The notes beneath the pieces were generated by a model that had not been told where the DNA came from, ran no database searches, and saw only the letters and a program-made list of their open reading frames with translations. Position numbers and translations under genes: made by a program. 64,000 bases of DNA from Paragordius varius (Eukaryota > Animalia > Nematomorpha), in contig OZ176052.1 in assembly GCA_964247055.1 (NCBI GenBank), forward strand, positions 8,866,001 through 8,930,000, in the 5' to 3' direction. This document shows positions 28,701 to 43,884 of the stretch, one piece after another; position 1 is the first letter of the stretch, and every line of letters begins with the position of its first letter.

Positions 28701-30140
28701 GATATTTAAATTTTGACTCGAGTAAAACCAAATTTTGTTAGTTAACGTTTTGTTTAACTCGATTATAATGTGTAGTCAAATTAAAGAATATAATATATAT
28801 TTAAAAAAAAACAACTTACTTGTTTGTCATGATAAAATGATGGGAACAACTTAAGTTTCCAATATAAAGCATAATATGTATCCTTATGCATAGCATTGAT
28901 ATATTGTATGCAATATTCAGGGTAATGGTCAAAGTATAGTTTTACCTATTATAAAAATAAAAATTCTACAAACTATAGATAGCCATATTTTACTTTTTGG
29001 TTAGAATAAATAATTCAATCAATATGTTTGAACGAACTTTTTTGGATGTTACAATGCGATTGAATAATTGTAAATATTGAGCATTAGACTAATCGTTTAT
29101 TTAAGTTTGCAATTATGATATTAGTTTACTTATTATGACTGATAAAGGAATTTATTAGAGGACAGACGAATCTTTATTTTTTGACTGATTAAAAGGCCAG
29201 TACTTTTGAATATATAAAAAAATTAAAATGACAATATTTTATAAATAAAATATCATATTTTTTTAAATTAAATAAATTAGTTGGGGAAGTTTCTTATTTT
29301 ATATTGACCTTCATATAAGTGTTGTGAAAACTTAGGTCAATTACAATGTAAAGCTGATTTGTTCTTTCTCTTTAAAAATTTTATTAACATTATGTTGGAA
29401 GATACAAAAAAGAAATATAAACTTCAATTAACTTAAAATCAAATATTATACATGACTGTATTTTACAAAAAAATATTTGTCAACTTTTTTTTAACAAGAG
29501 GGTTATTCAAAAGTCTGTGGCCAATAACTATAGAGCGAAAAAAGTTCAAGAGCGTGTGTAAATAAAAAACAGCAAAAAGTTTTTTAACTGTTTTATAGAT
29601 CTGATTATTAGATTTTAAGTCGCTTAATCAGATACCGAACACAATTAAACCACTATCATTCCACGGCAACTTGATATAATCAAAAAAAAATGATTTTAAT
29701 TAGAAAATAAAATAACCAGTTCGTAATCGTAATACTGTTGATTGATATTCAAAATATAATAATAGGAATTCATAATTTTTTGCATCCGTAATTTAGGAAA
29801 TATTTCTAATAATTATAAATAAATAAACCTATCGATTGATTAGTAATTTTAATCATATAGAAAATCATTTCTTTAACAAATGATTTATTGAGAAATTTTG
29901 AATAAGGGTCAAAACAGGAAGGTTTGTCATCATAGAACGAATAAAAATGTTGCAAAAGATGTGTATGATGACATTTCTTAGATCTTATAAATTCTTTAAC
30001 TAGACCTTTTTGCTTAGGATCATTAATAAGATTGATAAAAATATCCTAGGTATAAAAAATACACTTACTAAAAAAGCCGTAAAGTCTAAATTCTGATTAC
30101 AAATATCTTTGAAGACAAATTTTTGAATTGTTTCAGTCAT
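25759..30140 (-). CDS. EXD3: EXD3/Mut-7/Nibbler DEDDy 3'-5' exoribonuclease, 7 exons, ~646 aa
   Basis: Exons 30140-30069, 30045-29829, 29805-29717, 29088-29038, 28945-28820, 28147-27923, 26919-25759 (1941 nt, phase-consistent GT-AG; first two introns 23 nt). Exonuclease motifs: IGLDCEWVP, SLLQIS..VFLIDM, VVKLGFSIMEDL, GLSQLIHWCFGKCLDKTEQQSDWSQRPLRDAQIYYAALDSYCL. YYEMHLP precedes the domain, as YYQLPIP does in human EXD3. The last two exons are secure; exons 1-5 rest on weaker similarity plus splice signals. Confidence 0.85.
27137..27342. mobile_element. Small Tc1-like MITE in EXD3 intron 6
   Basis: TA|CAGT...ACTG|TA termini. Internal inverted pair ACGTAAAAATATAAGACAAATATT / AATACTTGTCTTTATATTTTTACGT. 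Confidence 0.5.
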
Positions 30141-30149
30141 TTGATACAC
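30141..30149. promoter_or_regulatory. 9-bp spacer between the divergent EXD3 and PNPT1 start codons (shared control region inferred)
   Basis: Sequence CAT-TTGATACAC-ATG. Each ATG is the first after an upstream in-frame stop (30087-30089 on +, 30170-30168 on -). Confidence 0.55.
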
Positions 30150-33100
30150 ATGCTCACGTTTCGTGGTTTAAATTTCAAATTTTTTAGGAAGCTCAATGTG
30201 GGACGCAAGTTTGATATGCCTTTAATCTGTCAAATAGTTTTGAAATATCTACAGGTAAATTAGCCAAATTAGCAGAAAGTTCAGTTGTTGTTAAGGTACA
30301 TGTTACTAATTAATTTTAGTTGGGTGAAACATCAGTAATGGTGACAGCGATATCGAGCAAAAAGCCAAATCTATCCGCACAATTTTTGCCTTTAACCGTA
30401 CTTTGTTAGTTAATAATTTAGGTTGATTATAGACAAAAAGCAGCCGCTGGCGGACGCATTCCTACAAATTTTTTGAGGCGAGAATTAGGAATATCGGATA
30501 AAGAAATATTAACTAGTCGTATGATTGACCGTTCTATACGGCCAATGTTTTATCCTAATTATTTTTATGATACACAAGTTAATTAACTTAAAACTATTTA
30601 GGTTGTGTGCAATCTTTTAGCTGTTGACGGTATTAATGATCCTGATGTTGCATGTATTAATGGTGGTATGCTTTTAGTACACTTTTAATAATCGGCTATT
30701 GTTTTCTTCCCTATATTTTATCAATCGTTACATACAACTCAACAATAAAATTTTATTTCATTTTAATTGACAGTAAATAGTAGAAATGATTTTTTAAACT
30801 GTGAAAAATTAATATACAGATGTATATTGCAGATAAAACTTTTTTCTATACTCATTTATATAATTTTTTGATAGGAAGGTTTTTTTACTTAATGTTTCTT
30901 TTTTTATTCTTTAAGCGTCCGCAGCCATAAACCTATCAACAATTCCTTGGTTTGGGCCTGTAGGTGCTGTCCGGCTTTCCTTGATTGATGGGGAAATCGT
31001 AGTCAATCCCACCAGGAGGGAACAATCACTCGCCAATCTCAATCTTGTTTTAGCTGGCACGCTAGGGAACAAAGTAGGTTTGTTCCCAAAAAATGCATTT
31101 TTACTACAATTTAAGTCCCACTTTTGTCGCAAATTTAAACATAATATCTATTCAGGGGGATTTTTACAATAGATGTGGCATACTAGGGAACAAAATAGGT
31201 TTGTTTTGAAAATTGCATTTTATAATAACGCAAATTTTCAAATAAGACTCAAACGCATTGCTATTTCTGCGTTAAATATTGCTAGATAGCATACACAGTA
31301 CAGGAAAATACTACTGGCTTTAAAGTTGATGTTTTTGTTTTTTGATATAAGCCTGTTTGTGCCTTGCTGTATTTGTATTTGATAATATCCATTGAAAAAC
31401 TAACACTGAATTTTTACTCTTACTGTACTTTTAAAGAGGAATACATGTGCGCTAATGATGATTTTTCCATTATTATGCCCTATATTATTTGACTTATGTT
31501 TTTTCCCCTTTTTTAGTAAATTTTACTGTAGTATTTATAATATCTTGAAATTTTCCATCATTAAATATAAATATCCAAAATTTGAACCACATAAAAGAGT
31601 TGCGATATATATATTTTTAAATCTAATATTTAACCTTACCTTTGCATATTTTTTCATCATAAATGCAGTCCTTTTTGGCCGTTCCACTAATAAGCGTATT
31701 GGTTCATATAGGAGTCGGCAACCTTTTTGGGACTGCCGACTATTTTAATAATATTTATTAAGCAAACGGCATATTTAAATTATAAATGTTACTTTTATCA
31801 ATTATAAAATTTAAAATAAATTTTTTTAAATAATTAAATCTCATTTCAATACGTTGAATTACTCTAAGTGCAAATAAACTAACCTGTTCATTTCATATAT
31901 TTTCATTAACTCTTTTTTAATACATTTTATAAAAATAATTATTAATTTTGAATTATATTAGACGTTTTGATCGAGTAAATATTCATAATACTGGTCTCTT
32001 TAATATTTGTTCAATTCTGTCATGGATTGAGATTTTTTATATATTTACTTTCATGTCTAATTGGTGACTCAAATTAATATTTTCCAAGTATTTATAATAT
32101 TTACGAATTAGACATAGTATTCTTAATCACCACTAACAAATTCTCGGTTTTCTCCTTCATATATTTTATCAATTCACTCAGAAAACATATATTATAGTGA
32201 TTTTCCATTCTTGGTCTATTGGGAATCCCTATACATAACTGATCATTATCGGTTTTTCTTGATGTTTCTATTATTGCAGATATTTCTTACCGATTCAGAC
32301 GCGATCAATCACTCTTCTAAGTTTAATATGTTTTTCGCTAAAATCTTTTCATTTTTATTGGTTTATATTATATAAATGCACATTCATATAAGAAATAAAA
32401 ATTATTTTCATTATTACCCACATATTTTATATATGCAGTAATGTTGGAGGGTTTTGGTGACGAAATACCCCTACATGACATTATGCGTGCCATAAAAACG
32501 GGACTTAAAGAAATACACGGAATCATAAAATCGATTAATCAATTAACCCAAAAATTTGGGAAAGAGAAAAAAAGTTGCCCTCTTGAATCCTCAAAAATAA
32601 TGCAATCATCAACATCTTTGCCTGTATTGGAACAGGAAGCAGCATTGAACACAAAAAAGAGCGATGTTGAGATTCGGAATGATATAAATTCTTATTTGGT
32701 ATAAAGTTTTTGAAATATGTACTCCATGTGTGATCAAATTAATATATTTTTTATTTTTTTTGCTTTGATTTTTGAAGAAAAAGTTATAAATGCTTCAATA
32801 TAATCTTAATCTTTTTCACTTTTAATGTATAAATTTTATATTACGGCAATAGGTTTCTTGTAAATTTAATTTATATAAGCTTTGATAATGAAATATATAA
32901 ATATATATAATGCGTATATATTGTTAATTATGAACGATTATTATTTATTTAAAAATTTAATTTATTGCCTTGTTTTATTTTTATTTTCCCCCAATTTTTT
33001 TTTATTAAACGTCAATTTTTTCAACAAATCGCAGTTCTTACACTGTGTTATTTTTTTGGAAAAAAATATATATTTTTACTAAATTAATTTTTTTGGTTCA

Positions 33101-36100
33101 TAGGACACCGATTATAAAGAACAACTTTTAACCATACTTACGAATCATAAGCTAGATAAACAGCAAAGAGATGTGGAACTCACCAATTTTCGAACATTAG
33201 CTAGTGATGCTATTAATTGTAATTATTCTATTTTAACAGTCAAAAATTGATAATATTTAAAAGAAAAAGCCTATCATTTTTTTAAATGATAACCTTTTTA
33301 ATCCTTTTATTCTATCTAATTTATATGATTACGTTTGCGAAATGTATGAAGGTGTAACTTTTTTATCAGTAATCTGGGTATATATAAAAACTAAGGAATA
33401 AAACTTTTTTTACTTGTGTTAAACAAGCATAATATTTACTGTACTATAGCAAAATATCCAAATACGGAAAGTAATACCGTTTCTCAGTCTGTTAACATTT
33501 TTGTCAAAGATCAATTTCGACAAATGATTTTAGAGGATGGATTAAGGTATAAAATCATTAAATTTTATCATATTTAATATTTTTTAAATTAGAGCTTTTT
33601 ATCTTTTTGATTTGTGTATTTTTAAAGTGTAATGAAATATAATTTTATTTTATATATTTTATTTTATTTCATTCCGCCATTCTTTATCTAAAAAATGTGA
33701 AATGATGAAAATATTAGTTATTTTTCCGTTAATTAGATTGGTTTTTATTAAATTCATAACTAATTCTTGTTTTGTAATATCCATAATTCTTGGTTATGTT
33801 GTCAATAGTATAATAGAGTTTGATAAAATATTTTTTGAATACTTTTATTATATAAAATAAAATTAAAGATTATTTTTTCCATTTTTTATACTTTATGGAA
33901 TGGTATTACTTGAAAATTTTATGTTTTGGTTTTGCAATTAAATATTCGATAATCAAGCTTTTATTAACTGCCAATCCTTATTTAATTCATGGATTTTGAA
34001 AATTAAGACATTAATATATATTTTTTAGTTATACAACTATATAAATTCAATTAATAATTTTAATATGTAATATTTAAATTATCGTAAAATGTCATGTTTT
34101 ATTTTTTAAAAAAAATAATAATATAAAGGGTAGACGGGAGACAATTGGATGAAATAAGGAATATTGAATGTGAAGTTGATTTATATAAACCGTTACATGG
34201 GTCAGCACTCTTTACAAGGGGACAAACACAAGTTCATAGTTTTCTCCAATTATTTAGGATAACTATTTTGATTTTTTTTCAATTAACTATTTTGATTTTT
34301 TTTTAAAAAAATTAAAAAAAAATCAATTTGTAAAAAATTTATTTTTTAGGTTTTATGCACTGTTACGTTTGATTCACTTGATGCCGCTTTTAAATCAGAT
34401 CCCATTTCAATTCTTACAGGGTATTAATGAATTATCTAATATTTATACATAGAGCTATCAAAGAAAAGAATTTTATGCTACATTATGAGGTAAATTTATA
34501 CTAAAATATTTTGTTTTATTTATTATTTTACTATTATTTGCAACCAAAAGGTTTATTTTTTAATCTTATTTGTTAAAGTGTTGTCACATGATGCGTAATA
34601 AATAACTTATACTTAGTCAATTGATTTTAATAATTTTGGCGTTTTTCATGACTTTAACCAATTAAATTGGTGTTAATTCGTAATGACAGTGTATTGTTTT
34701 CAAAAGTAAGGTTTTTATGGGATCTTTAGAATGCACCATCTATAAGTTGAGGCGAGGTTTTAACTTTTAATACTTTTTATCCGACATAAATAAATTTAAA
34801 AACTGCGCAGTTTTTCCATTATCACTGGCAGTCCTGGATAGGCGAATGTTAAAGCTTTCACCCGTCACGATTTTATTTAAGTCCATATCCTTTGATAATA
34901 AAGGAAAAATGAGACTATAAAGTGTAAATATAAGCGTAAAATCATACAACTCATATATGTGTGAATGTACATTTGCTCATATTTAGTTTCCCCCTTATGC
35001 CACGAATGAAATTGGGAAAGTTGGTTTTGTGGGCAGAAGGGAGCTTGGACACGGGGCTTTGGCTGAGAGAGCGCTCAGAGCAGTTTTACCTGCAAACAAT
35101 GATTTCACTATACGGCTTACTTCGGAGGTCCTAGAATCTAATGGTATTTCATTATGCTTTAATATAATTTGATTCTATGTAGTTTATATGGAATGTACTT
35201 GTGTAATTATATAAAGGGTATTTGAGGTTTATTTTGTTAAAAAAAGTGCTGGTTACTATATTTAAATTATTTCTCTTACATAATATAAAGCTGCTAATTC
35301 CCCCCTTAGTTTTCGAAACCCAAAAATCTAATCAGCTCTTATTTTTATTATGTTTTCCACAAATGTGATTTTATATAGTTATAATTTTATAAAATTTAAT
35401 TTAACGTAAATGATTTTTTAAAATCTAAACTTCATTTCGGAAAACGAATATAGTATAAAAATTATCTATTTTAAAACTTACAACTTTTTTTTTATTTTGC
35501 CTAGGGTCCTCATCAATGGCTACTTGTTGTGGAGGTACATTAGCTCTTTTAGATGCTGGAGTTAACATTACTAATTCTGTTAGTGGGGTAGCTATAGGAT
35601 TAATTACTGATTATACCTCTAATAATATTCAATCTAATAATTCTTTTGATCAATCATTATCCAATGATCAAACAACACCAACTTTTACGAAATATCGTGT
35701 GCTAACCGATATTCTTGGCATCGAGGATTACTATGGGGATATGGATTTCAAAGTTGCCAGCACTAAGAAGGGAATCACATCTCTGCAAGTAAATATAGTT
35801 TTAAGATTTTTATTGATGAAATTAATCAACAATTAAGCAGAATACAAGTTTATGTTTTTGTTAAATGACGAATTCAAAAATTAGTCAAGTTTTAATTAAA
35901 GCACAAATGTCATCTAATGCGATCTCCATTTAATAACTTATTTGAATAGTTTTTATTATTTCGAATCAATATAATTAATTGTTTGTAGTATAATTTAATG
36001 TCTTTTGACCTTGTTGTAATATTATATACACGGATACAAAGATATATAATTGTTTTAGGTAACTGACATTAAATGCGATAGTTTTATTATTGAAAAATGA

Positions 36101-38505
36101 GCATTATGTCATCAAATAAACTACAGCTGAGTTTTACTTTTGACCCTAAAAACAAAAAACTAATATATTTTTCTTTTCTAATTTTACTTAAAATCCTCTT
36201 TTATTTACTACAAATTATCTAATTTTTTATTCAAAACTCTTTAATATTTGAAATTTATTGCAACATTCCTTAGGCCGACATAAAATTACCCGGTATCCCA
36301 GTTTCATTAGTTCAGGAAGCGCTTGAAAAAGCACGCTTGGCAAATAATAAAATTCTAAAAATTATGAATTGTACACTAGCTCAGCCAACCGATAAAAAGG
36401 AGAAAGATAATAAACCTGTAACGGAAAAACTTATTATTCCACTCACTAAACGAGCCAAATTTATGGGTTATGGTGGATATAATATCAAAAAAATTCAAAA
36501 TGATACAGGTAAATTTTTACATAATCTGTAAATACTGTAATTTTGATATGTTTTATATTTTGTGTTACGTCTGCATAGATGGTATAAAGATTGATTTAGT
36601 TCATTTTTGTGACCGTTCGCTATTATTCCAAATCTTTTGATATATAATAGTTTTGTTGATTTTGATGGGTATATGTTTATAAGGATTTCTCTTGAAAACC
36701 GTCAATCTCTGGGGTTTTATTATTTAGTATATATGCATGGACGCATTCGATTTCTGCTTGCTAACATTGTATTTGGTTCTGATTTATGAGAATATTTTAT
36801 AGTTGTTCCATATTTAATTTTTTTTCCTTTCAAAGATTTTTTCCACCTTGTAAAAGTTGGAACTTTTTAGCAGACATTAACAGAAGATATGGCAAAAATA
36901 CACCAATAAAATTTTGATCTTTTTTCTGTACTCGAAAATCCATTAAAAGAGTGGTAGAAACCATAATTTTTTATGATGCATCACAGTTGTAAATCAAGGA
37001 CCCATAGATATACACTATATATATGTTATGAATAGAAAATAATAAATTAAAAAACATTTCTAGTCAAACTAATAGATATTATTATTAACATCATACGTCA
37101 TCATAAATTTTTTGAAAAACGATTATCAAAAAAAGATTAATTTAATTAACATTAATTTAAAAGTTTAAACATGTTTTTGGTTTTAAATATTTTCTAAATT
37201 ACGATAATATTTAATATTTTTTTTATAAAAAAATAAATGTCGAAAAAAATCGACCATGTTTTTACAAATTAATTTTTATATTGACATCTTCTGCTTTATA
37301 AATTGTACCATTCATTTTCTTTTTTCATGGAATAATCAATATTTTTAATTCTTAGTTTTATTAATAATATCATTTGCTTATTACACTATGCATAGGCATT
37401 CAAATTACACCCTTTGATGAAACGACATACAATTTATTTGCCCCAAATCAAACGGTAATGAATGAAGCTAAAGAAAAAATCCGTGAATTAATGGATTCGT
37501 CTGAAAAAAGTGGTGGGGGACCACCCACCCCTGAAACCTTGTTTGAATTTGGTGATGTTTTAACCGCTAAAATTGTTGAGATTAGAGATATTGGCCTTAT
37601 GGTATTGTTACATCCCACACTTCAACCAACTTTGCTACATAATTCACAACTTGATACGCGAAAGGTAGCTTTGTGTTTATTGATTATTTATTTGAAAAAT
37701 GATTTTTTTTTCGTTTTTATCATGAATTTAAAACTGCAATTTTGTTGCTTTGAAAATGAAATGTTTTTACACTGTTTGCAACTGCTTAATAAATTAGTAG
37801 GATGTTATTTTTAATGTGTAAAATTTGTGACAATTGTGGAAAAAATACACGAGTCTATATCCAAATCATGACCCCATTTTTTAAAAAATATTAATTAAAA
37901 TTTAATTTTATATAATAATTTATAATACATGGAGGATATTACAGAGGTGTGGTTCACTGTATATACAAATATTTTTAGCTTTGTTTAAGCGCATAATTAA
38001 TTGCATTCTATCTGATGTTAAAAATCTATTTAGACCAGGGGTGTTCAAATGCAGCCCCTCAAAATTTTTCTGCCGGGATAAATACAAAATTTTGCGGAAT
38101 CTAAGACCAAATTATTTTCTTAACCAAATCCTTGATAAATCGTTCAGAACTTTGGCAAGAACTAGCAAAAATGTTAAAATAAATAGTTGTTACAGTCGTA
38201 GATCGAAAATCTAATAAAATATTTGTTATTGCTCATATATTTTCCAAATGCCGCCCTCCGAATTTTTTGATCTATGCGAAGCCATTTCAATTGGACACCC
38301 CTGATTTAGACAAAATTTTGAATAAATATCTTATTTTTCTTTTCTTTAGATCAAACATGCAAGCGTGCTCGGTTATGAAATTGGTCAAGAAATTTTAGTC
38401 AAATATTTTGGTCGAGACCCGGTCACCGGAAACATTCGATTATCAAGGAAAGTTTTAACTAATGTCACACCTAATGTTAACAAATCTATTTCTTCCAAAC
38501 AATAA
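30150..38505 (+). CDS. PNPT1: Mitochondrial polyribonucleotide nucleotidyltransferase (PNPase), 17 exons, ~786 aa
   Basis: Exons 30150-30208, 30238-30295, 30320-30397, 30422-30577, 30602-30665, 30916-31077, 32439-32698, 33104-33218, 33450-33546, 34129-34231, 34350-34420, 34453-34489, 34987-35143, 35505-35788, 36274-36508, 37396-37664, 38350-38505 (2361 nt). Motifs: [94 protein letters not shown], plus KH and S1 domains. The short acid-free N-terminus [19 protein letters not shown] is presequence-like. Confidence 0.96.
38036..38303. mobile_element. 268-bp hAT MITE in the last PNPT1 intron
   Basis: TIRs CAGGGGTGTTCAAAT / ATTGGACACCCCTG with a perfect 8-bp TSD ATTTAGAC (38028-38035 and 38304-38311). 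Confidence 0.92.
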
Positions 38506-42373: not shown

Positions 42374-43884
42374 ATGGATTTGGTCCTTAATATTTGTGAT
42401 AACTACTTTTTGACCCCTTATATATATCCACCAAATTTTTTACCTCACAATATATGGAGACAAATTATATCACTAACATTTGTAGTCAATTTGGGCGCAA
42501 TTCTATTATATATATCTACTGCAACTATAAGCTACTTTTTTATTTTTGATAAATCACTGATGAAACATCCATTGTTTCTTAAGGTATATACAGTTTTTAT
42601 TACAGAATCAAGTTTATCTTGAAATATCATATGCTCTTGGGTCAATACCTTTTATGAGCATGCCTACGATCGTAATATTTTTGTTGGAAGTCCGTGGTTA
42701 CAGCAAATTGTATGATGACTTTAGCGAATCTCAATTTGGTAAATTTTAAGTGTGTAATAAATTTTAAGGTTACTTTAGTATAGTGTTTGAAACAGTTACA
42801 TTTATCTTATTTACGGATTGTTTTATATATTGGATACATCGATGGCTCCACATACCTTGGATCTATCGACGCTTTCATAAACAACATCATTTGTATAAAA
42901 TTACGACACCGTTTGCAAGTCATGCATTTCATCCCCTTGATGGATTTTCTCAAAGCTTACCTTATCACATTTACCCATTTTTGTTTCCGCTAAATAAACT
43001 TACATATTTGGGTTTGTTTGTGGCCGTAAACATTTGGACAATTAGTATTCATGATGGGGCTTACGGGGTCCCCACTTGGCTTAAACCGTTTGTTAATGGA
43101 TCGGCTCATCACACTGATCATCACATGTATTACCGCTATAACTATGGGCAATTCTTTACGCTCTGGGATAGGTTAATTTTTATTTCAATCCTTTTTTTGC
43201 ACGTTCGTTCGAAAGAAATAGTTTTTAATATGTAAATATAATTTTTAATTTTTTTCAATAATACAATTGTTTTATAAAAAAACAATATTTTGAGTTCAGT
43301 CATTCCTTGTTGTGGCTTTTTCCAGGGTGACTCATTTTTATTTCTGTTTGGAAAAATTGTCTTTTTTAAACAATTCTATAAACCTGCATAAAAGCACACA
43401 ACTAATTCTATTTTCATTGAAATTAAATGAGTTAATTAACGCTTTTTAAGCCATTTTTATCGATGTTTAAAAAAAATTATGCGGATTATCTTTTGAAAAA
43501 AATATTTTCATTATGCCGACTAATGTTTTAGTGATTATCTCAATTTAATAATATTCTTTTCAAAAAAATTTCGAGGTTTTCTAACTTGTATAAAAAGCGT
43601 TTTCCTATATTTTTTATAACAGAATTGGTGGATCATTTCGGACCCCGACATCATTTTTAGGTAATGGACCAGCTGATTATGTAAAGCGCCAAATGGAAAA
43701 AGCATTATCTTTGGATAAAAATACTGAAAAATTGCAAGATTCAACGCATGAAACAAATAGTATTTTGTTAAATGGACATTCACATCATACGAACGAACAA
43801 AATGGTTCTCTAGGTTTAAGAGCGCGTAAACATGTATTAGAAAACAATGGATTTATTCATTTCAAAACTCGAGTCGAAAATTAA
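42374..43884 (+). CDS. SC5D: Lathosterol oxidase / sterol C5-desaturase, 4 exons
   Basis: Exons 42374-42583, 42606-42738, 42769-43171, 43623-43884 (introns 22, 30, 451 nt). Spliced protein: [19 protein letters not shown]...KHPLFLK|NQVYLEI...[13 protein letters not shown]...FG|YF...YWIHRWLH...HKQHH...[13 protein letters not shown]...HTDHH...[11 protein letters not shown]|IGGSF. All three His boxes are intact. Confidence 0.95.

Follow-up and report, generated by a model that had tools for sequence, protein, structure and literature searches.

The genome of the hairworm Paragordius varius contains, within a 64,000-nucleotide (nt) stretch of contig OZ176052.1 (positions 8,866,001 to 8,930,000, referred to here as 'the window' and numbered from its first letter), a gene encoding the mitochondrial polynucleotide phosphorylase (PNPase) known as PNPT1. 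The predicted coding sequence of that gene is interrupted both by introns of ordinary size and by five segments (termed 'micro-introns' below) of only 24 to 32 nt. The analysis described here indicates that introns of fewer than 30 nt are very probably spliced in this animal, below the 30-base limit that has long been assumed for animal introns.

Structure of the PNPT1 gene

The window is AT-rich (21-33% guanine plus cytosine (GC) per 2 kb) and is mostly non-coding. The PNPT1 gene spans positions 30150 to 38505 on the forward (+) strand, and was modelled as 17 exons encoding 786 amino acids (aa) and separated by 16 introns, the splice sites of which were refined from high-scoring segment pairs against the PNPT1 proteins of the nemertean Lineus and a sea anemone and against a Logan-derived PNPT1. 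All 16 introns (five micro-introns and 11 long introns) display GT-AG ends, and their lengths are, in order, 29, 24, 24, 24, 250, 1361, 405, 231, 582, 118, 32, 497, 361, 485, 887 and 685 nt. Removal of the five micro-introns and of the 11 ordinary introns (118-1361 nt) generates a coding sequence of 2361 nt that is closed by its only stop codon, and the predicted product of which is 52.7% identical to Lineus PNPT1 (P0151) across 772 alignment columns. The GC fraction of the exons is 0.37, as compared to 0.14-0.31 for the introns. Exon 4 (30422-30577, 52 aa) is itself approximately 83% identical to chains of human mitochondrial PNPT1 deposited in the PDB (E of approximately 4e-23). No close relative was found among the 150 representatives of a HMMER search, in which the best matches corresponded to 72% identity over 120 aa (a fish fragment) and 53% at full length (Lineus). 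The features upon which the argument depends are the following.

30150-30208, + strand: PNPT1 exon 1, beginning with ATG and encoding a short basic presequence (19 residues plus 2 nt)
30209-30237, + strand: micro-intron 1, 29 nt, phase 2, GTTTGATA...AAATAG
30296-30319, + strand: micro-intron 2, 24 nt, phase 0, GTACATGTTACTAATTAATTTTAG, with two in-frame stop codons
30398-30421, + strand: micro-intron 3, 24 nt, phase 0, GTACTTTGTTAGTTAATAATTTAG, with two in-frame stop codons
30578-30601, + strand: micro-intron 4, 24 nt, phase 0, GTTAATTAACTTAAAACTATTTAG, with two in-frame stop codons
30666-30915, + strand: PNPT1 intron 5, an ordinary intron of 250 nt, phase 1, at which the run of micro-introns ends
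34421-34452, + strand: micro-intron 11, 32 nt, phase 2, GTATTAATGAATTATCTAATATTTATACATAG, located in the middle of the gene

A separate peculiarity of the protein is found in exon 14 (35507-35788, + strand), which encodes a lineage-specific insertion of approximately 17-25 residues, rich in S, N, Q and T, that is located in the second RNase PH domain when compared to the PNPases of Lineus, whale and E. coli. When used as a protein query, exon 14 produced no match of more than 53% identity.

Recognition of the micro-introns

The boundaries of the three 24-nt segments were established by comparison with homologous proteins. When E. coli PNPase (with the query taken from the annotated K-12 record) was aligned by tblastn across positions 30230-30664, the alignment was interrupted by three gaps, each of exactly eight codons, that coincide with the three 24-mers, and the same exact eight-codon gaps were again produced by three animal PNPT1 proteins. 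Removal of the 24-mers makes the conserved blocks VVVK^LGET, FLPLT^VDYRQK and YDTQ^VVCNLL contiguous (with '^' marking each junction), and the spliced N-terminus then aligns to 11 homologues ungapped across all three junctions. If retained, the same segments would be translated as VHVTN(stop)F(stop), LC(stop)LII(stop) and VN(stop)LKTI(stop). Based on the frequencies of GT and AG in the window (0.045 and 0.039, respectively), the probability that all three pairs of gap edges would fall on GT and AG by chance is approximately 5e-9, and a chance origin of those edges is therefore implausible.

Retention of either of the remaining two micro-introns would also disrupt the reading frame. The 29-mer shifts the frame, such that the unspliced frame leading to the sequence FEISTGK possesses an upstream stop codon and lacks an upstream methionine, while retention of the 32-mer at 34421-34452 creates the reading GGG TAT TAA. 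The first-pass annotation of this DNA had described four GT..AG segments of 29, 24, 24 and 24 nt at the beginning of the gene, and had asserted that each 24-mer contains in-frame stop codons, that excision of the 24-mers rejoins conserved PNPase blocks, and that the 29-mer alters the frame if retained; the segments and their sequences, the two stop codons per 24-mer, the eight-codon gaps and the disrupted FEISTGK frame all bear out that description, to which the 32-nt intron is an addition.

Ancestral positions of the PNPT1 introns

The PNPT1 structure was compared with those of Lineus (L002), the sea anemone Actinostola (L003) and the whipworm Trichuris suis (L004), by mapping each protein exactly onto its DNA and then placing all of them in a joint alignment. 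This comparison supplies the strongest of the new evidence. For fourteen of the 16 introns, one or more of those three animals has an intron at the same alignment column and in the same phase. The counterparts of the five micro-introns are the following.

30209-30237 (29 nt): Lineus intron 1 (444 nt) and Actinostola intron 1 (77 nt), one column off and in the same phase 2; none in Trichuris
30296-30319 (24 nt): Lineus intron 2 (316 nt) and Actinostola intron 2 (768 nt), same column and phase; none in Trichuris
30398-30421 (24 nt): Lineus intron 3 (294 nt) and Actinostola intron 3 (1298 nt), same column and phase; none in Trichuris
30578-30601 (24 nt): Actinostola intron 5 (90 nt) and Trichuris suis intron 1 (53 nt), same column and phase; none in Lineus
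34421-34452 (32 nt): Lineus intron 13 (401 nt) and Actinostola intron 14 (261 nt), same column and phase; none in Trichuris

Four of the five micro-introns thus match exactly in position and phase to introns of 53-1298 nt, an agreement that would be expected by chance with a probability of approximately 1e-7 (given 30 outgroup intron positions distributed along 2358 coding nucleotides), and the fifth, the 29-mer, is located directly 3' of the same VG(G/R) motif as are its counterparts in Lineus and Actinostola. The ordinary intron 5 likewise has counterparts of 273 nt in Lineus and 203 nt in Actinostola, identical to it in position and phase. Because they share positions and phases with ordinary introns, the micro-introns are old introns that have shrunk, rather than new insertions.

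An isoform of pilot-whale PNPT1 (P0003) contains a 29-residue cassette at YDTQ^ILCNLL, which corresponds to the junction of micro-intron 4, and is consistent with the presence of a mammalian exon junction at that position as well. The PNPT1 gene of Trichuris suis retains just two introns (of 53 and 63 nt), one of which is found at YxxxQ^V(L/V)CNL, the position of the third 24-mer.

Choice of the first intron

An in-frame connection between the ATG at 30150 and exon 2 is provided by only two GT-AG pairs, of 29 nt (30209-30237) and 80 nt (30158-30237). The 29-nt segment is probably the true first intron, in that its use retains the sequence KLNVGRN and the ancestral phase 2. Within that sequence the NVGR motif of exon 1 corresponds in the alignment to (V/L)G(G/N)(R/T) in other animals, and the phase 2 intron is thereby placed immediately after the motif, as it is in Lineus and Actinostola. 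The competing possibility, which pertains to the 29-mer only, is that the true first intron is either the 80-nt segment, which employs the same acceptor at 30237, or a longer intron that extends from an upstream exon outside the model. That possibility derives some weight from the presequence of exon 1, which is not conserved and was covered by no homologue, and from the start of an EXD3-like gene on the opposite strand only 9 bp away; an acceptor-like sequence, TTGTTTCAG, that ends at position 30136, just 5' of the ATG, further hints at additional 5' processing. However, the 80-nt choice would leave just the residues MLT ahead of the mature domain, and a first intron other than the 29-mer is, on balance, rather unlikely.

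The acceptor-like sequence (30128-30136, + strand) is situated 13 nt upstream of the PNPT1 ATG and within an exon of the opposite-strand EXD3 gene. It could correspond to the acceptor of an intron in the 5' untranslated region, or to a trans-splice acceptor of the nematode type.

Splice signals and a proposed mechanism of removal

The splice signals of the micro-introns are minimal. Their 5' ends in PNPT1 read GTTTGA, GTACAT, GTACTT, GTTAAT and GTATTA (that is, GTA in three and GTT in two, too few for construction of a logo), none contains an AAGT extension or a GTAAGT-type 5' end, and the 5' ends of the long PNPT1 introns are equally minimal. At the 3' end, TTTAG is found in the three 24-mers, and ATAG in the other two PNPT1 micro-introns. 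The first-pass annotation had proposed a CTAAT/TTAAT branch point approximately 14 nt from the 5' splice site. A YTAAY motif is found in the 3' halves of only four of the window's seven micro-introns; in sequence that is approximately 80% A+T, that number is indistinguishable from chance and does not constitute evidence for such a branch point.

Two additional intron classes were considered and rejected. The extended (A/G)TATCCTT 5' consensus and TCCTTAAC branch site of U12-type introns are found in no micro-intron. For an IRE1-type intron (as in XBP1 and HAC1), the bases preceding the cuts are AAG, ACC, CAA and TAG, and do not provide a C at -3 and a G at -1 at both edges.

The proposed history and the most likely mechanism of the micro-introns can be outlined as follows. 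Ordinary ancestral metazoan introns very probably shrank in this lineage to lengths of 24-32 nt, while eleven others in PNPT1 remained at 118-1361 nt. The spliceosome would remove the micro-introns from the pre-mRNA in a U2-dependent manner and by intron definition, for which a minimal 5' signal (GTA or GTT), a short T run and a terminal AG (TTTAG or ATAG) would be used, with a branch adenosine located somewhere 5-14 nt upstream of the AG. The in-frame stop codons within the three introns of 3n length would allow nonsense-mediated decay to clear messages that escape splicing. A similar link between nonsense-mediated decay and in-frame stops in 3n introns has been argued for Paramecium.

Independent DNA samples and natural variation

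Contigs from two DNA runs (X2 and X5) and from two putative RNA runs (X9 and X11) were compared with positions 29900-35899, and a search across sequencing runs identified seven likely DNA runs, from several studies and under four organism labels, that contain the PNPT1 region. The Logan contigs of X2, which represents another sample, cover positions 29978-30279 and 30347-30693, while a contig of X5, from another study and under another organism label, covers positions 30032-30420; all of them are free of gaps at the segments in question.

Natural variation was observed both within the micro-introns and in the surrounding exons. Micro-intron 2 displays an A to T change at 30298 and, in one haplotype of X2, a deletion of a single nucleotide at 30299 that reduces its length from 24 to 23 nt and that would break the frame were the segment coding; micro-intron 3 displays a T to C change at 30417. 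In the exons, 21 of the 26 variants listed fall at codon position 3 and 19 of 26 are synonymous, according to the frame assigned here.

Runs X5, X6 and X7, which carry three other organism labels, contain 24-47% of the sampled words of the PNPT1 locus. These runs may derive from hairworms that are closely related or carry the wrong name, or else from hosts that were sampled with the worm inside them. A 2026 preprint has reportedly described species misidentification in the open data for Chordodes.

Assessment of alternative explanations

The conclusion that PNPT1 is a functional gene and that its five segments are genuine spliceosomal introns, of the U2-type GT-AG class, is considered to be highly likely, on the evidence of the DNA and of its homologues. 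That these are real micro-introns is strongly supported by the combination of (i) ancestral positions and phases, (ii) an intact open reading frame of 786 aa, (iii) variation that is mostly synonymous in the exons and that includes an intronic indel, and (iv) the presence of the segments in independent DNA samples. The first-pass annotation had proposed spliceosomal micro-introns at the 5' end of PNPT1; their identity as introns is upheld by position, phase, reading frame, variation and DNA samples, while their actual splicing is a step that we infer.

Several observations count against that conclusion. The search across runs found no RNA run that contains the PNPT1 locus, and nothing meaningful from RNA runs X9 and X11, which carry the same species label, could be placed on the gene. 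A scan of the window at Rfam gathering thresholds was empty, and no small nuclear RNA genes were thus found in it. A search of the window for 18-40-nt segments with GT..AG ends and flanks of 25 or more open codons found 396, as compared to 369-543 for control dinucleotide pairs; a scan for pattern alone thus performs no differently than its controls, and it is therefore homology and intron position, and not sequence pattern by itself, that carry the argument. Finally, the donor of the 29-mer depends upon a weakly conserved N-terminus, and either the 80-nt segment or a first exon located farther away may apply instead.

The same lack of RNA coverage in X9 and X11 would be accommodated if the locus were a decaying pseudogene, in which the 24-mers were simply insertions that contain stop codons by chance. 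Such decay is very improbable. All 17 exons are open and the 786-aa product is 53% identical to nemertean PNPT1, the supposed insertions are positioned exactly at ancestral intron positions and possess GT..AG ends, and the predominance of third-position and synonymous changes among the exonic variants reflects purifying selection, from which it follows that the gene is not a pseudogene; moreover, low expression is anticipated for PNPT1, and the RNA assemblies are of limited size (19-30 Mb). A still less probable explanation, to the point of being nearly negligible, is that the segments are artefacts of assembly or polishing, for which no supporting point was found. Assembly insertions had been named in the first-pass annotation as an objection to its own proposal; since the DNA contigs of X2 and X5 carry the segments ungapped, they are not assembly insertions, and one haplotype further displays natural variation within them.

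The segments might alternatively be removed by a route that does not involve the spliceosome, such as IRE1-type cytoplasmic splicing, somatic DNA elimination or ribosomal bypassing. Their size resembles that of an XBP1/HAC1-type intron (23-26 nt in XBP1), and the other routes are compatible with the present record of RNA and lariats. Nevertheless, the edges of the segments are GT..AG rather than the CNG^NNG loops of IRE1 sites, they occupy positions and phases at which three distantly related animals have bona fide spliceosomal introns, the DNA runs contain them, and the long introns of PNPT1 display the same minimal GTA/GTT...AG signals. Removal by any of these other routes is accordingly regarded as a slim prospect, and spliceosomal excision remains the favoured account.

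SC5D and other neighbouring genes

A second gene in the window, identified by homology as SC5D (lathosterol oxidase), also contains very short introns, and could be compared directly with its counterpart in another hairworm, the RefSeq-annotated Gordionus sp. m RMFG-2023.

42371 to about 43790, + strand: SC5D gene
42584-42605, + strand: SC5D intron 1, 22 nt, phase 0; 44 nt in Gordionus at the same junction, HPLFLK^DQIFLE
42739-42768, + strand: SC5D intron 2, 30 nt, phase 1; 4337 nt in Gordionus at the same position and phase
43172-43622, + strand: SC5D intron 3, an ordinary intron of 451 nt

The spliced SC5D product aligns without gaps to its Gordionus counterpart (P0316), with 66.5% identity over 245 aa; that protein was the best of about 120 matches, the next best of which was 60% identical, while no relative of SC5D was found in the PDB. 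A homeodomain gene lies on the opposite strand downstream of SC5D both in the window and at the Gordionus locus (L005), and the GC content of that locus is 25.6%, as compared to about 27% in the window. Together, the SC5D similarity, gene order and GC content lend modest support, from one gene, to a hairworm affinity of the window.

Five micro-introns of the two genes are shorter than 30 bp, namely four in PNPT1 (29, 24, 24 and 24 nt) and one in SC5D (22 nt), with those of 32 and 30 nt falling just above that limit. The tiny introns are found mostly toward the 5' end, with long introns downstream: in PNPT1 they comprise introns 1-4 of 16 as well as intron 11, and in SC5D introns 1-2 of 3. This polarity of intron size in PNPT1 and SC5D is the opposite of the usual long first intron.

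Upstream of PNPT1, an EXD3/Mut-7-like gene is encoded on the reverse (-) strand, with its ATG at 30140-30138, such that its start codon and that of PNPT1 (30150-30152, + strand) are arranged head to head, 9 bp apart; the upstream region of either gene therefore lies inside the other. Two candidate 23-nt GT..AG segments are found in the EXD3-like gene, and their removal would generate a continuous N-terminal open reading frame.

30068-30046, - strand: candidate GT..AG segment, 23 nt, EXD3-like gene
29828-29806, - strand: candidate GT..AG segment, 23 nt, EXD3-like gene

The N-terminus of the EXD3-like gene was covered by no homologue, and the two segments retain the status of candidates. When the large EXD-like exon was used as a query, only a match of 26% to Enterobius was produced.

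Implications

These observations would add a new animal lineage to those known to harbor a recently recognised kind of intron. Introns of fewer than 30 bp have been accepted in two other animal lineages on the basis of conserved positions together with long-read RNA (PMC13644364); if the present interpretation is true, the animal described here would represent a third such lineage, a bilaterian one, in which the length limit of the animal spliceosome was broken without compaction of the genome. The juxtaposition of 24-nt and 1.4-kb introns in PNPT1 would also provide a natural comparison, within a single transcript, of two splicing regimes.

A gene predictor that is unable to model micro-introns would truncate or split the 5' end of PNPT1, because each one that is retained adds a stop codon or a frameshift. 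The assertion in the first-pass annotation that standard gene predictors would miss these introns is thus plausible. The BUSCO completeness of hairworm assemblies is low (71.6% in Gordionus), and estimates of gene loss in hairworms merit re-examination with a minimum intron length of approximately 18 nt. A broader proposal, which is offered tentatively and is at present more doubtful than probable, is that introns of 22-32 nt might form a discrete class, located mainly near gene starts and beside kilobase introns in a repeat-rich and non-compact genome, such that miniaturisation would be uncoupled from genome reduction and a separate splicing mode would be needed; since such introns are not modelled by gene finders, some of the 'rampant loss of universal metazoan genes' inferred for Nematomorpha, together with low hairworm BUSCO values, would then correspond to an annotation artefact.

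Comparison with known systems of very short introns

Before a recent survey (PMC13644364; Mol Biol Evol, September 2026), animals were taken to lack introns of less than about 30 bp, and apparent cases were put down to errors of annotation. Across 51 genomes, its authors found such introns only in myxobolid Myxozoa and in Dicyema japonicum, and reported a median intron length of 27 bp in Henneguya salminicola and of 22 bp in Thelohanellus kitauei and Myxobolus rasmusseni, while arguing from conserved U2 and U2AF that the ultra-short introns of Myxozoa are spliced in a U2-dependent manner. Nematomorpha receive no mention in the main text of that survey. The first-pass annotation had listed ciliates, nucleomorphs, microsporidia and dicyemids as the principal groups with introns in the low 20s, to which the myxobolid Myxozoa must be added (PMC13644364).

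The micro-introns of Paragordius varius resemble those of the myxobolids in having GT-AG ends at lengths below 30 nt, in occupying conserved positions between conserved exons, in displaying a 5' signal of approximately GTa, and in the clustering of short introns. The two systems differ in several respects. The myxobolids are cnidarians with compact genomes (approximately 75 Mb) in which even the median intron is ultra-short, whereas the lineage described here is bilaterian and the micro-introns lie beside long introns in a mostly non-coding, gene-poor and apparently repeat-rich region; ultra-short introns as the norm and a compact genome, which characterize the class as it was defined (PMC13644364), are not what was found in two genes of one 64-kb window, where 11 of the 16 PNPT1 introns measure 118-1361 nt. 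Unlike those of the myxobolids, the three 24-mers have kept a T run before the AG, in the form of TTTAG. Splicing in Henneguya was demonstrated by Iso-Seq, whereas the introns described here are known from DNA alone.

Dicyema japonicum is, like a hairworm, a parasitic bilaterian, and possesses GT-AG introns in the 20s of nucleotides within an exon-intron structure that is otherwise conserved (PMC13644364, PMC6736024). The shortening in Dicyema accompanies a reduced genome, whereas PNPT1 and SC5D, the two genes compared here, have just some introns of tiny size, mostly at the 5' end. Ciliates display introns of the same size range (approximately 25 nt in Paramecium; PMC8997360, PMC5014332), and introns of 15-16 nt are attributed to Stentor (as cited in PMC13644364); unlike PNPT1, however, these protists have virtually none but tiny introns, with no long class in the same genes. 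The human introns termed 'ultra-short' (less than 66 nt, and validated to the 40s; PMC4463651) are also near the lower limit that has been assumed for the animal spliceosome, but are still about twice as long as the PNPT1 24-mers.

Within the hairworms themselves, the genome papers that were found make no mention of introns. The genome of Gordionus is reported to have a GC content of 26.9%, a repeat content of 63.8% and a BUSCO completeness of 71.6% (10.1101/2023.06.26.546503), and its SC5D gene offers the closest available comparison: the first intron, orthologous in position and phase, is twice as long as the 22-nt intron of Paragordius varius, while the orthologous second intron extends to 4337 nt, as compared to 30 nt in the window.

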